In this document: positions 2,054 to 5,770 of the stretch, in pieces | Layout: each line of letters starts with the position of its first letter | How positions within the stretch are numbered: position 1 is the stretch's first letter | Assembly: GCF_001194135.2 (NCBI RefSeq) | Contig: NC_068981.1 | Span: 16,303,625 to 16,338,637 of the forward strand | DNA: 35,013 nucleotides | Direction: 5' to 3' | Origin: Octopus bimaculoides | Taxonomy: Eukaryota | The notes under the pieces: generated by a model | Told to the model about the DNA's origin: nothing | The model's input: only the letters and a program-made list of their open reading frames with translations | Databases searched by the model: none | Program-made: the position numbers and the translations under genes

Positions 2054-2916
2054 AGTAAACTGCAAGAATTTATAATATTACGAGAATAAAAGTATATACC
2101 AAATGCTGACTATATTAAAAATTCTAGTAAATGCATGTAGTTACATAATTTTTCTATTTATGGTCCGTTTGTACATATGTGATTGTAAGTTCGTGTACGG
2201 GTATGTGTGTCTGTGTTTCTGTGTGTGTTTCAAATGATACGGCCAATTACTTCATAGTTCAACAATTTTGTATTTTCTAAAATCTAAATAAGAAAATCGA
2301 TAGGAATGAATAATAAAAACATTCGCAATAAATGTCATAAAAGAGAACAGGAATCAGTGTAAAACTAACAGGAAATGTTCATTGGGCTTTTGTTGTGTTC
2401 TTGGGGCATAGGAAATAGAAATCATGTAGCGGATATATTCTCAACGTGGGTTGTGCATATTAATACTCTGACTAACATTCATATATATATATATATATAT
2501 ACGTGCCTATACGTACGCTTATATGTGTATGTATGTATCCGCGTGTACCGAGAGGTAACAGGTTATGGCGAATATATTCATCAATAATGTAACCGGAGAT
2601 TAGTATTCAATAGTCTAGTTTGAATAGTGAAATTTTCAATTTAACTTCACTGCCTATAAAGTGCCGTGCTTCTCACAAAACGTACTGTAGGCACAACCTA
2701 TTGTGTGTGTGAGTGTGTTTATGAGTGTGTTTCTGTCTCTGTGTGTGTGTGTATACGTGTTAGGTGAATAACTTGCCAAGTTGGTGTGATTTAATCGTGA
2801 CTGATAATTAAAAAGGCACATATCTTAATAATTCTTCTGCATAATTTAATATAAGTTGATACATGCCTATAACAAACACAGATTTTTCAACCTGTGTTTT
2901 ATGTGTATACATGATT

Positions 2917-2966
2917 TTGTGTGTGTGTATGTATGTGTGTGTGTGTGTGTGTATGTGTGTGTGTGC
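2917..2966. repeat. (TG)n microsatellite
   Basis: Directly visible. Confidence 0.95.
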
Positions 2967-3063
2967 GTTTTATATATAAACATATAAAAGAATTTGTAGT
3001 GTTCAAAGCAATTTTGGCCAGATATCAATTTAGATATACATTGTATAATATATCGTTTCAAAG

Positions 3064-3645
3064 AGGCGGTGAGCTGGCAGAAAGGATTAAACAAGTACCA
3101 GTTACGTACTGAGGTCGATATAATTGATTTAATCCGTTTGTCTCTCCTTGTTTGTCCCCTCTGTGTGTAGCCCCTTGTGGGCAGTAAAGAAATAAGAAAC
3201 GTTAGTGCACCAAGGCGGCGAGATAGCAGAAACGTTAGCGCACCGTGCGAAATGCTTAGCGGTATTTCGTCTGCGGTTACGTTCTGAGTTCAAATTCTGC
3301 GATCGACATTGCCTTTCATCCTTTCGGGGTCGATAAATTAAGCAACAGTTACGAACTGGGGTCGATGTAATCGACTTAATCCCTTTGTCTGTCCTTGTTT
3401 GTCCCCTCTATCTTTAGCCCTTTGTGGGCAATAAAGAAATAAGAAACGTTAGCACGCCGGGCGAAATGCTTAGCGGTATTTCGTCTGTCTTTACGTTCTG
3501 AGTTCAAATTCTGCCGAGGTCGACTTTGCCTTTCATCCTTTCGGGGTTGATAAATTAAGTACCAGTTGCGTAGTGGGGTTGTTCTAGTCGACTGGCTCCC
3601 TCCCCTAAAATTTCGGACCTTGTGCCTAGAGTAGAAAAGAATAAT
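3064..3645 (+). mobile_element. Nested/tandem array of tRNA-derived SINE-A: head + truncated body + AATAAA tail; full head + body + AATAAA tail; body + ordinary tail
   Basis: Heads AGGCGG(T/C)GAG..GCAGAA at 3064 and 3212. B-box-like GAGTTCAAATT at about 3287 and 3500. Body motif CCTTTCATCCTTTCGGGGT(C/T)GATAAATTAAG. 63-bp tail at 3132-3194 and 3379-3441, each followed by AGAAACGTTAG. Terminal tail ...GTGCCTAGAGTAGAAAAGAATAAT ends at 3645. Confidence 0.9.
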
Positions 3646-3857
3646 GGTTTCAAATTTTGTCACAAGGCCAGCAGTTTTCAGGAGGAGTAAATCGATTACA
3701 CAGACCTCAGTGTTTGACTGGTACATACTTTATCGAATCCGAAATTATAAAACGCAAAGTGGAACTCGACGGAATTTGGACTCAAAACGTAAAGACGGAC
3801 GAAATGCCGCTAAGCATTTTGTCCGGCGCGGCAACGATTCTGCCAGCTCGTCACCTT
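3643..3857 (-). mobile_element. SINE-A, full length, tail-to-tail with the preceding array
   Basis: Reverse complement reads AAGGTGACGAGCTGGCAGAATCGTTG...AAAATGCTTAGCGGCATTTCGTCCGTCTTTACGTTTTGAGTCCAAATT...GGCCTTGTGACAAAATTTGAAACCATTATT. Confidence 0.9.
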
Positions 3858-5091
3858 ATGCAGGATAAAATATCCTAATCGCAGTTATTAGGTAGCAATG
3901 ATGCAAGATCTTGCTGCCCGTGTAGCGGCACAAAGAAAAACAGACACCATGTATTTAATACTCCACTGCAGAAGACAGAGCTGTGACGAATTTCCATAAG
4001 TAATCTTTGTGAGTGGTTAATCGGGAACATGTTTTGTTGGCGGTCAATAAATTTTGAGAAAGTCTGGGTCATTTTACTTCTTGTAGAATAATAATTTTAA
4101 TATAGTTCATTGATTAAGAAGCGGTGGTAAGATGGGCATGTTTTCTTTATTCGACTTTTATATCAGATACCTCAATGAAAATCAACAGCCCTTGAGAGTA
4201 GAGTAGGCCGACGTACTTGAGAGTCAGCTTTTAGCATTTCTTTTGTAAATCTATTGAATTTTAAGGTCCAATTAAGAAATGGAAAATATTACATTCACGT
4301 GTTATTCATTTCCAAGACAATTAGGAACAAAAATAAAGTGAAGGGGCTATACAAGGGAGCAGCCAAGGTCCCTTGAGCTCGTGAATCTAACTCAAACCGA
4401 CAGTGTTCATGTTATTGTTTTATATATATGAGACCGTTTAGATTAAACCATGTATTAAACAAATCTTGTTTCAACATCGTATAGTACAAAGAAAGGGAAA
4501 ATAAATTAACACTGAGTCTTACGTTTCTAATAAATGAAGAACAACCGGAAGTTAAACATGACCAGCAAGGTGATATTGATGCAGTTATGGAGAAGCAACA
4601 ATTTCCGATATCATTCTGTATGTAATCGAACTTTCTCAAAGAGCCACTGTTCAATTAATGAATATTTACTGTTATTGGGCGATCTCCAAAATTTCCAAAA
4701 GAAATCGGTAGTTTTGCTTGTATAACTTGTCTCTAGCTGTGAGGACACCGGATTGTAGATGGACTCATGAATTTGTTAGTCGTTAATTACACTGACAACT
4801 AATTAGAATTTACATCACATCGTAGAGAGGGAAGGGCCTTCGTTTCGAAAGCAGTTCATGCCATTTTTTTCCCTTCCCGTTTCTTATTGTGACTGTGTAT
4901 GTTAATGACTTGGCAGGAAAATGGAGCTGCTTTTCTTAATTCTTTATAATAGTTAGATTTTTCTTTCTATGTACGAGTTCAAACTTCATTGCGAAGACAA
5001 TTTTTTCCTTTCAACACTTGAATACACGAGAATAAATAAAATATGTACCAGTAATTGTCTGGTAATGATTATATAAATTGTACATACATAT

Positions 5092-5269
5092 AGGCGCATG
5101 AGTGGCTGTGAGGTAAGTAGCTTGCTTACCAACCACATGGCTCTGCGTTCAGTCCCACTGCGTGGCACCTTGGGCAAGTGTCTTCTACTATAGCCTCGGG
5201 TCGACCAAAGCCTTGTGAGTGGATTTGGTAGACGGAAAATGAAAGAAGCCTGTCGTATATATATATATA

Positions 5270-5307
<38 letters not shown>

Positions 5308-5770
5308 GGTTTTTAAACTTTTAAATTTTCATATTCAAAAGAGACAGAGACTTCAAATTCGATATATCTTATGCTATATTGGTAACGGTTGCTACATCCT
5401 CTGGGAAAATTATTACTATNNNNNNNNNNNNNNNNNNNNNNNNNNNNNNNNNNNNNNNNNNNNNNNNNNNNNNNNNNNNNNNNNNNNNNNNNNNNNNNNN
5501 NNNNNNNNNNNNNNNNNNNNNNNNNNNNNNNNNNNNNNNNNNNNNNNNNNNNNNNNTGTGTGTGTGAGTGTGTTTGTCCCCACAACATCGCTTGACAACT
5601 GATGTTGGTGTGTTTACGTCCCCGTAACTTAGCGGTTCGGCAAAAGGAAGCCGATAGAATAAGTACTAGGCTTACAAAGAATAAGTCCTGGGGTCGATTT
5701 GCTCGACTAAAAGCAGTGCTTCAGCATGGCCGCAGTCAAATGACTGAAACAAGTAAAAGAGTAAAAGAGA
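5092..5770 (+). mobile_element. SINE-B (tRNA head, CORE-like segment, internal microsatellite, CR1-like tail), interrupted by extra sequence and an N gap
   Basis: A-box-like TGGCTGTGAGG, B-box-like GTTCAGTCCC, CCTTGGGCAAGTGTCTT (resembles the MIR/CORE motif CTTGGGCAAGT), (TA)n from about 5256, then the 3' half at 5557-5770 ending CAGCATGGCCGCAGTCAAATGACTGAAAC and (GTAAAAGA) repeats. That both halves are one copy is inferred from the copy at 23325. Confidence 0.8.
5420..5556. other. Assembly gap (N run)
   Basis: N characters. Confidence 1.

Follow-up and report, generated by a model that had tools for sequence, protein, structure and literature searches.

A head-to-tail SINE array in an octopus genome and its probable origin by repeated insertion into the element's own family

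How does a short interspersed element (SINE) come to stand in a head-to-tail array? The question is raised by a 35,013-nt stretch of the Octopus bimaculoides genome (contig NC_068981.1, positions 16,303,625 to 16,338,637), which we call the window. At 3063-3645 on its plus strand, a SINE that we call SINE-A is interrupted by two further SINE-A units, both of which carry an alternative 63-nt 3' end (tail-1) in place of the ordinary one (tail-2). A first-pass annotation, made from the sequence alone, had proposed that such tail-swapped elements insert repeatedly, by target-primed reverse transcription (TPRT), into the head of their own family, and that this builds head-to-tail arrays. The proposal is supported by the target-site duplication (TSD) of one unit, by the 5' truncation of the other, and by two related organisms that lack the truncated unit.

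Structure and history of the array

We read positions 2700-4000 directly, and we checked the coordinates of the array by script. We also compared the window with contigs from public runs that contain the locus. These runs were from the same organism as the window (organism A) and from related organisms (B, C, D, and E).

The outer, oldest SINE-A carries the ordinary tail and spans 3063-3645. (The first-pass annotation put the start of the head at 3064 instead of 3063; the end of the ordinary tail is at about 3645.) The outer head (GAGGCGGTGAGCTGGCAGAAA, 3063-3083) is separated from its body by the insertions, and B and E have it at the orthologous site. Unit 1 (3084-3194) is a 5'-truncated SINE-A that ends in a G variant of tail-1 (...GGGCAGTAAAGAAATA) and has AGAAA on both sides. 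In other words, the outer head, up to GGCAGAAA, is fused to the 3' ~110 nt of another copy of the family. After unit 1 comes AGAAACGTTAGTGCACC (3195-3211), which continues the outer head, is contiguous with that head in B and E, and is the upstream copy of a 17-bp TSD. Unit 2 (3212-3441), an older insertion at the same site as unit 1, is a complete SINE-A with tail-1. It runs from AAGGCGGCGAGATAGCAGAAACGTTAGCGCACC..., directly past AGAAACGTTAGTGCACC, to ...GGGCAATAAAGAAATA, and it starts with AAGGCGGCGAG, as the consensus of reads upstream of heads also does at its 5' end. The downstream copy of the 17-bp TSD (AGAAACGTTAGCACGCC) lies at 3442-3458, as confirmed by the scripted check. The rest of the outer SINE-A (3442-3645) lacks its first 16 nt, begins with AGAAACGTTAGCACGCCGGGCG, and carries tail-2, which, according to the loose ends of reads, predominates after the branch point (3376-3378). 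This layout matches the annotation's description of a head joined to a body without its 5' part, then a complete new head, and last a unit with the ordinary tail.

The two 63-nt copies of tail-1 (3132-3194 and 3379-3441, by direct reading) had been described as ending alike and then running into the same sequence from inside the head, and this is what we see. Both terminate in AAAGAAATA, and the 11-mer AGAAACGTTAG follows each of them directly (3195-3205 and 3442-3452). The chance of finding one 11-mer after two tails is ~4^-11 per pair. The 11-mer is also inside the head of unit 2 (3228-3238), where it follows ...GATAGC; reads give a genome-wide head consensus in which it comes after AAGGCGGCGAGCTGGC. 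Both tail-1 insertions of the array are at one nucleotide of the head, GGC^AGAAAC, 16 nt from its start. Identity among the units is 83-85% (83% over 102 nt for unit 1 and unit 2), and they are spaced 246-248 nt apart. Tandem Repeats Finder did not report the array, as its units are too diverged and unequal.

The two copies of the unit 2 TSD are identical at 14 of 17 positions, and the annotation had listed their disagreement as a caveat. The copies read AGAAACGTTAG-TGCACC and AGAAACGTTAG-CACGCC, so that they differ by three transitions, each of which is a CG>TG or CG>CA step from GCGCGCC. In the read variant tables, changes at CpG (C>T and G>A, 8-10% per site) predominate. CpG decay would explain all three mismatches and so resolve the caveat.

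Independent runs of organism A yield contigs that reproduce the odd junctions, and these contigs have single-copy depth (about 25-60). Contigs from X1 and X3 match 2960-3114 exactly (the flank, the head, and the joint between the head and the truncated body), and a contig from X5 covers 2960-3119 with one difference. Contigs from X1 and X5 also match 3179-3270 exactly (tail-1, the 17-mer, and the new head). The closest assembly gap is at 5420. Because single-copy-depth contigs from independent runs cross the junctions, mis-assembly is excluded.

To find orthologs of the site of unit 1, we used a query (2985-3081) that stops inside the head; generic SINE heads cannot anchor on it. Orthologous contigs were found in E (X20, 469 nt) and in B (X19). 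They match the unique left flank at 2985-3070, and the E contig was additionally aligned over 2760-3078. Past this flank, B and E share an identical 30-mer, TTGCAAGCAGAAACGTTAGTGCACCAAGGC, which comprises the head, the 17-mer, and the start of unit 2. In both organisms, the head runs straight into AGAAACGTTAGTGCACCAAGGC, unit 1 is absent, and the first 5 nt of unit 2 follow the 17-mer. AGAAA, which is found on both sides of unit 1 in organism A, occurs once in B and E. Since unit 1 is absent from orthologs with an uninterrupted head, it is a lineage-specific, 5'-truncated insertion at GGC^AGAAAC. Since B and E retain the head, the 17-mer, and the start of unit 2, the 17-mer belongs to the outer head, and unit 2 predates the split between the species. 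The absence of unit 1 from B and E also indicates that the array grew by insertion and not by local duplication or mis-assembly, which had been named as outcomes that would refute the proposal. The variation in 5' ends that had been suggested as a check is present as well: one unit is full length with a 17-bp TSD, and one is 5'-truncated.

The orthologous head in B and E reads GAGGCGGT-TTGCAAGC-AGAAAC. The eight bases just before AGAAA (3071-3078) are the consensus-like GAGCTGGC in organism A and TTGCAAGC in B and E; four of the eight differ. It is possible that the new copy was joined at its 5' end by homology inside the resident head, which would replace bases of the head and leave no duplicated head. 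A homology-joined 5' end would also explain why junctions of the form "head + TSD + new head" are nearly absent from the genome (see below).

On this evidence, the locus formed in three steps. An old SINE-A with tail-2 inserted here first, probably into the tail of a minus-strand copy. Next, a full-length tail-1 copy (unit 2) entered GGC^AGAAAC with a 17-bp TSD, which re-created the site upstream. The last step, taken only in organism A's lineage after it had split from the related species, was the insertion of unit 1, a 5'-truncated tail-1 copy, at the site in the upstream copy of the TSD.

The minus-strand copy is a separate and older SINE-A (~3650-3857) that lies tail to tail with the array; contigs from B, C, and D cover 3633/3649-3798/3809. 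The two tails meet at 3640-3660 and have a common AATAAT/ATTATT end. The outer plus-strand SINE-A likely has a genuine TSD: the 8-mer GTTTCAAA at 3055-3062, before the head, is repeated identically at 3647-3654, directly past the ordinary tail (scripted check). Because the right copy lies partly within the minus-strand SINE's tail, the match could be due to chance. The outer copy seems to have inserted into that tail.

Insertion sites of tail-1 copies

The window contains one more tail-1 copy, which lies outside of any SINE. This solitary copy (23990-24084, plus strand) is 5'-truncated and is 87% identical to unit 2. It is flanked by perfect 13-bp repeats of ACAAACTATCAAC (23977-23989 and 24085-24097), and its target site, in unique DNA, begins with ACAAAC. 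We searched for its orthologs with a query that was designed as for unit 1. In B, C, and E, contigs match 23899-23990 and continue from there with CATACATCATAGCGAGTCG..., which is the window's sequence beyond 24098; they lack the solitary copy, which is therefore a lineage-specific insertion. These empty sites hold ACAAACTATCAAC once. The empty site also establishes ...AAATA as the true 3' end of tail-1 and 13 bp as the length of the TSD, and it identifies the A(C/G)AAAC that follows the tail as target DNA. So, of the two verified lineage-specific insertions of tail-1 in this 35-kb sample, one is at the SINE-A head site.

These copies have the features of SINEs that are mobilized by TPRT. The TSD is single in the empty site (ACAAACTATCAAC in B, C, and E; AGAAA in B and E), and the 3' end is constant (AAAGAAATA) while the length varies (230, 111, and 95 nt in the three copies).

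To see how often tail-1 ends at the SINE-A head site, we examined three 2026 runs of organism A (X21-X23), with ~1.9 Gb of reads sampled per run. Our queries were built so that reads could anchor on one side of the junction alone, and the counted reads are those that are at least 90% similar to the window's copy. The tail-1 query (3382-3457) contains the tail plus 16 nt past the junction, and the mirror query (3425-3500) contains 17 nt of tail-1 plus the body.

In the three runs, the depth along the tail-1 query goes from 10,796, 12,076, and 10,552 reads at 3439-41 to 4,619, 5,388, and 4,157 reads at 3448-50, and to 4,274, 4,906, and 3,786 reads at 3451-53. This means that 36-45% of the tail-1 ends (at least 90% similar) continue as AGAAACGTTAGC. 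The flanks are not random, which was the outcome that the annotation's proposal called for when it suggested tabulating the sequence after the tail. With the mirror query, 4,690, 5,417, and 4,153 reads span the junction, versus 43,898, 37,275, and 30,144 reads at 3446-48, so tail-1 replaces the first 16 nt in 11-15% of SINE-A copies. The counts of junction-spanning reads agree between the two queries. In 1.9 Gb of sampled reads, the depth of tail-1 is ~16,000 reads, versus ~60,000 for the body of SINE-A.

The window holds 50 AGAAAC sites (on both strands), of which just three are in SINE-A heads, all of them within the array. A preference for the hexamer alone predicts a few per cent of tail-1 ends at the head site, not 40%. 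There is a preference outside of SINE-A too: ~70% of the depth of those tail-1 ends persists over AGA and ~30% over AAC. By our own arithmetic, random AT-rich flanks would give ~13% and <1%, respectively. This implies that the bases after AAAGAAATA are biased towards AGAA(A)(C), whatever follows.

Tail-1 is followed by heads of both subfamilies, AGAAACG and AGAATCG, which speaks for independent origins. The AGAATCG form (T at 3446) makes up 15% of junction-spanning reads, versus 21% of all heads. Four other organisms also have the junction between tail-1 and the head, on contigs of single-copy depth. The G variant of the tail, at 3431, is present in 16% of all tails with the tail-1 query; it is not listed among the junction-spanning reads of the mirror query, where this position is only 7 nt from the end of the query.

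Tail-1 has other recurrent continuations. Two of them, AGAA-GCTTGATTCCCAACCACATGG and AGAAAC-TGAAAGAAGCCCGTCG, correspond to a different SINE at ~5094-5256, and AT-rich unique flanks are found after tail-1 as well. The copy at 5094-5256 (...GCTTGCTTACCAACCACATGGCTC...GACGGAAAATGAAAGAAGCCTGTCGT) is apparently tRNA-like, with a (TA)n run behind it. Two sites in this family, AGAAGCTTG in the head and GAAACTGAAAG near the end, are recurrent tail-1 continuations in the reads.

Runs X21-X23 are apparently proximity-ligation libraries. In these runs, hundreds to thousands of raw reads have a perfect 30-nt palindrome, AGGTTCGTCCATCGATCGATGGACGAACCT, as their loose end, at many positions within 3212-3500. 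It was not found in the window, and it is most likely a proximity-ligation bridge or linker rather than genomic sequence. As for the window itself, assembly gaps (runs of N) at 5420-5556, 19040-19823, 24741-24750, and 31414-32365 make up 5.4% of it. Several of the long open reading frames (ORFs) that were listed mechanically (such as 18970-19950 and 31223-32758) cross these gaps, and they have no match in Pfam.

How the arrays may form

We think it quite likely that TPRT of the tail-1 subfamily is biased towards the SINE-A head site and that this builds the arrays. A subfamily of SINE-A with the alternative 63-nt 3' end (tail-1, ...AATAAAGAAATA) would be mobilized by TPRT, with priming that is strongly biased towards A(G/C)AAAC on the element's strand. 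The head of SINE-A offers AAGGCGGCGAGCTGGC^AGAAACGTTAGC, 16 nt from the 5' end, and insertions there far exceed the share that the motif would predict. Each insertion would cut off the first 16 nt of the resident copy and place a tail-1 unit before AGAAACG. Where a TSD forms, it would regenerate the site upstream, which would permit renewed insertion and yield a head-to-tail array.

The preference could arise because the nicked target strand pairs with the A-rich 3' end of the RNA, because of the nicking specificity of the partner long interspersed element (LINE), or both. The tail's AAGAAAT-A, followed by AGAAAC, resembles a second AAGAAAY unit. In other LINE/SINE pairs, 3'-terminal repeats are linked to the first bases of the TSD, and this link has been explained by pairing between primer and template or by the choice of the nick site (PMC6007223). 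Homology between the new complementary DNA (cDNA) and the resident SINE may aid the joining of the 5' end, often without leaving a duplicated head, and some of the resulting composites may later be copied whole. Candidates for the factor beyond the hexamer are a longer recognition sequence, homology between the cDNA and the target, or this later copying of composites. A more specific idea, which we consider rather unlikely, is that the tail-1 machinery recognizes the head of SINE-A (an extended sequence or structure at GGC^AGAAACGTTAGC) or exploits cDNA homology, so that the element's own family serves as a "safe haven."

Several observations weigh against biased self-insertion as the full explanation. 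The polarity of the changes between species (insertion and not deletion) comes from the hallmark of a TSD and not from an outgroup. The SINE-A site is struck ~10-25 fold more than the frequency of AGAAAC would give, so the hexamer does not suffice. Joints of the form "head + TSD + new head" (3239 back to 3212) are found in 1, 1, and 4 reads per run, versus ~4,500 reads for the junction. Given this scarcity, most tail-1/AGAAACG junctions must have another 5' structure, or else they are copies of a few composites; truncated inserts, ends resolved by homology, and template-switch chimeras are candidates for the other structures. The near-absence of joints that go back to a new head rules out simple full-length nested insertion as the source of the genome-wide junctions. 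The length of the junction does not vary at the 5% level or above, and this would fit amplified, fixed composites too. There is a second fixed junction, in which the G variant of tail-1 is joined to GGTATTTCG (~740-1,100 reads per run). The tail variant is GGG[C/T]AGTAAAGAAATA, and it is joined to GGTATTTCGTC..., a stretch of SINE-A that begins at about position 48. In window coordinates, 3194 or 3441 is joined to 3475, and contigs from A, B, C, D, and E carry this junction. This class looks like an amplified composite subfamily. Finally, the partner LINE was not found: the window contains no LINE with tail-1, and its ORFs of at least 130 amino acids have no match in Pfam.

Some of these observations would be expected if ancestral composite SINEs, with a left unit that ends in tail-1 and a right unit that starts from AGAAACG, formed once or a few times and were then amplified whole, like the dimeric Alu, while self-insertion was rare. 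We view this as possible but doubtful. It would account for a fixed junction without indel variants at the 5% level or above, for the near-absence of joints from a head and TSD to a new head, and for a second fixed junction (GGTATTTCG) that is tied to a variant of the tail and is present in B, C, and E. Also, tail-1 lacks a TTTT run, and it is conceivable that RNA polymerase III (Pol III) would read through a composite. But amplification of composites fails at the locus, where unit 1 is lineage-specific and unit 2 has a 17-bp TSD of its own. Right units of both kinds, AGAAACG and AGAATCG, occur in near genome-wide proportions; one of the two verified lineage-specific insertions struck the site; and flanks that are not SINEs likewise begin with AGA or AGAA. 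Composite amplification probably contributes to the genome-wide numbers, but it cannot account for the locus.

Template switching is an accepted origin of many composite SINEs (PMC4824008), so each array might instead be a chimeric cDNA from a single event. The reverse transcriptase would halt ~16 nt short of the 5' end on a SINE-A RNA, due to structure, a modified base, or cleavage of the RNA, and would resume at the 3' end of a tail-1 RNA. This would decapitate the downstream unit and give one TSD per array. This predicts a complete upstream tail, a fixed downstream truncation, and no internal TSD. It fits the scarcity of joints that go back to a new head, and it also fits the recurrent second breakpoint at GGTATTTCG. 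However, the locus acquired its units at different times, and the array includes an internal TSD, that of unit 2. At the solitary insertion, the A(C/G)AAAC behind the tail proves to be target DNA and not template, and flanks that are not SINEs begin with AGAA too. We consider the chimeric origin improbable overall, and the stepwise history across species leads us to reject a single template-switching event at the locus. Local tandem duplication, unequal crossing-over, or an assembly artifact might be suspected from the regular spacing of the units (246-248 nt), and reads do align across paralogous positions. Yet the junctions were reproduced by independent runs at single-copy depth; the units are 83-85% identical, with different variants of the tail and head and different 5' ends; and relatives lack exactly one unit, which is bounded by AGAAA repeats. 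An origin of this kind is extremely improbable.

Related systems and implications

Biased TPRT of tail-1 into the SINE-A head works like target-preferring TPRT by a "stringent" LINE/SINE pair, with an outcome like Alu-into-Alu insertion and the birth of dimeric SINEs. Stringent pairs of the RTE, CR1, or L2 type (Nishiyama and Ohshima 2018, PMC6007223) also use TPRT, with TSDs and frequent 5' truncation, and the first bases of their TSDs resemble the end of the element; here, AAGAAAT-A resembles AGAAAC and ACAAAC. In those pairs, the overlap is one to a few bases and the preference is diffuse, whereas for tail-1, one site in its own family takes 36-45% of the ends.

Alu and other L1-dependent SINEs insert into the A-rich linker or the poly(A) tail of resident Alus. 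As with tail-1, a preferred motif leads to landing in the element's own family and gives nested or tandem clusters. In Alu-into-Alu insertion, the target is the tail or linker and the resident copy stays intact, while tail-1 inserts 16 nt into the head, so that the 5' end is lost, and its share of self-hits is much higher.

Some elements without long terminal repeats are sequence-specific, including R1 and R2 and the members of the Tx1 group, which insert into the genes for small nuclear RNA (snRNA), 5S RNA, or tRNA, or into microsatellites. Like tail-1, they insert repeatedly at one exact nucleotide of a multicopy sequence that resembles a small RNA. They are nearly confined to their target, whereas more than half of the tail-1 ends are elsewhere (36-45% are at the SINE-A site), and one insertion, at 23990, was verified in unique DNA at ACAAAC. 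Tail-1 is not strictly site-specific. The first-pass annotation had offered a sequence-specific Tx1-type endonuclease as one possible cause of the insertions, with A-rich microhomology priming as the other; these other flanks contradict strict specificity, and we identified no endonuclease. SINEs with snRNA heads have also been described (PMC4494074).

Dimeric or composite SINEs, such as Alu, the dimeric SINE of the shrew mole (PMC13023118), and the template-switch hybrids of MetaSINE (PMC4824008), have head-to-tail units with an A-rich junction, as the array does. The class of reads in which the tail is joined to GGTATTTCG behaves like a fixed composite SINE. But dimeric SINEs are inherited as one, while the units at our locus were added stepwise: unit 1 is absent from B and E where unit 2 is present, and unit 2 has its own TSD. 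Nor does the array resemble a satellite or a tandem duplication, given identities of 83-85%, differing 5' boundaries, and growth by insertion.

The first-pass annotation had placed the insertion site in the Pol III A box of the SINE. This putative A box is a match by eye: TGGCAGAAACG partly resembles an A box, and GAGTTCAAATTCC resembles a B box. ARAGORN found no tRNA in the window or in the consensus from reads, and Rfam assigned the head neither to tRNA nor to any other RNA family. (An Rfam match to mir-297 at 2925-2992, with 31 bits versus a gathering score of 90, is an artifact of a (TG)n microsatellite, and we rejected it.)

In our literature searches, we found no paper on self-insertion or arrays of cephalopod SINEs, and no paper that gives these SINE sequences. 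To our knowledge, almost nothing has been learned experimentally about target choice by LINE/SINE pairs in mollusks. Differences between species at sites such as these could be used to measure the target choice of a LINE/SINE pair of the non-L1 type in a mollusk.

The locus provides a dated case, exact to the nucleotide, of how head-to-tail arrays or composite SINEs can arise by repeated insertion at a site that regenerates itself, instead of by duplication. In this family, a large fraction of the new copies also end up inside older members, which should lower the damage to the host. Such insertions would inactivate resident copies by removing their 5' ends, and they would skew the copy numbers and ages that are estimated from repeat annotations. 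If the tail-1 machinery does recognize the head, or uses homology to it, then the decapitation of resident copies would seed arrays and would offer a route to dimeric SINEs and to SINE-derived satellites, which could be observed in progress across closely related species. The interest of this array comes chiefly from a process that has been caught in progress between related species.
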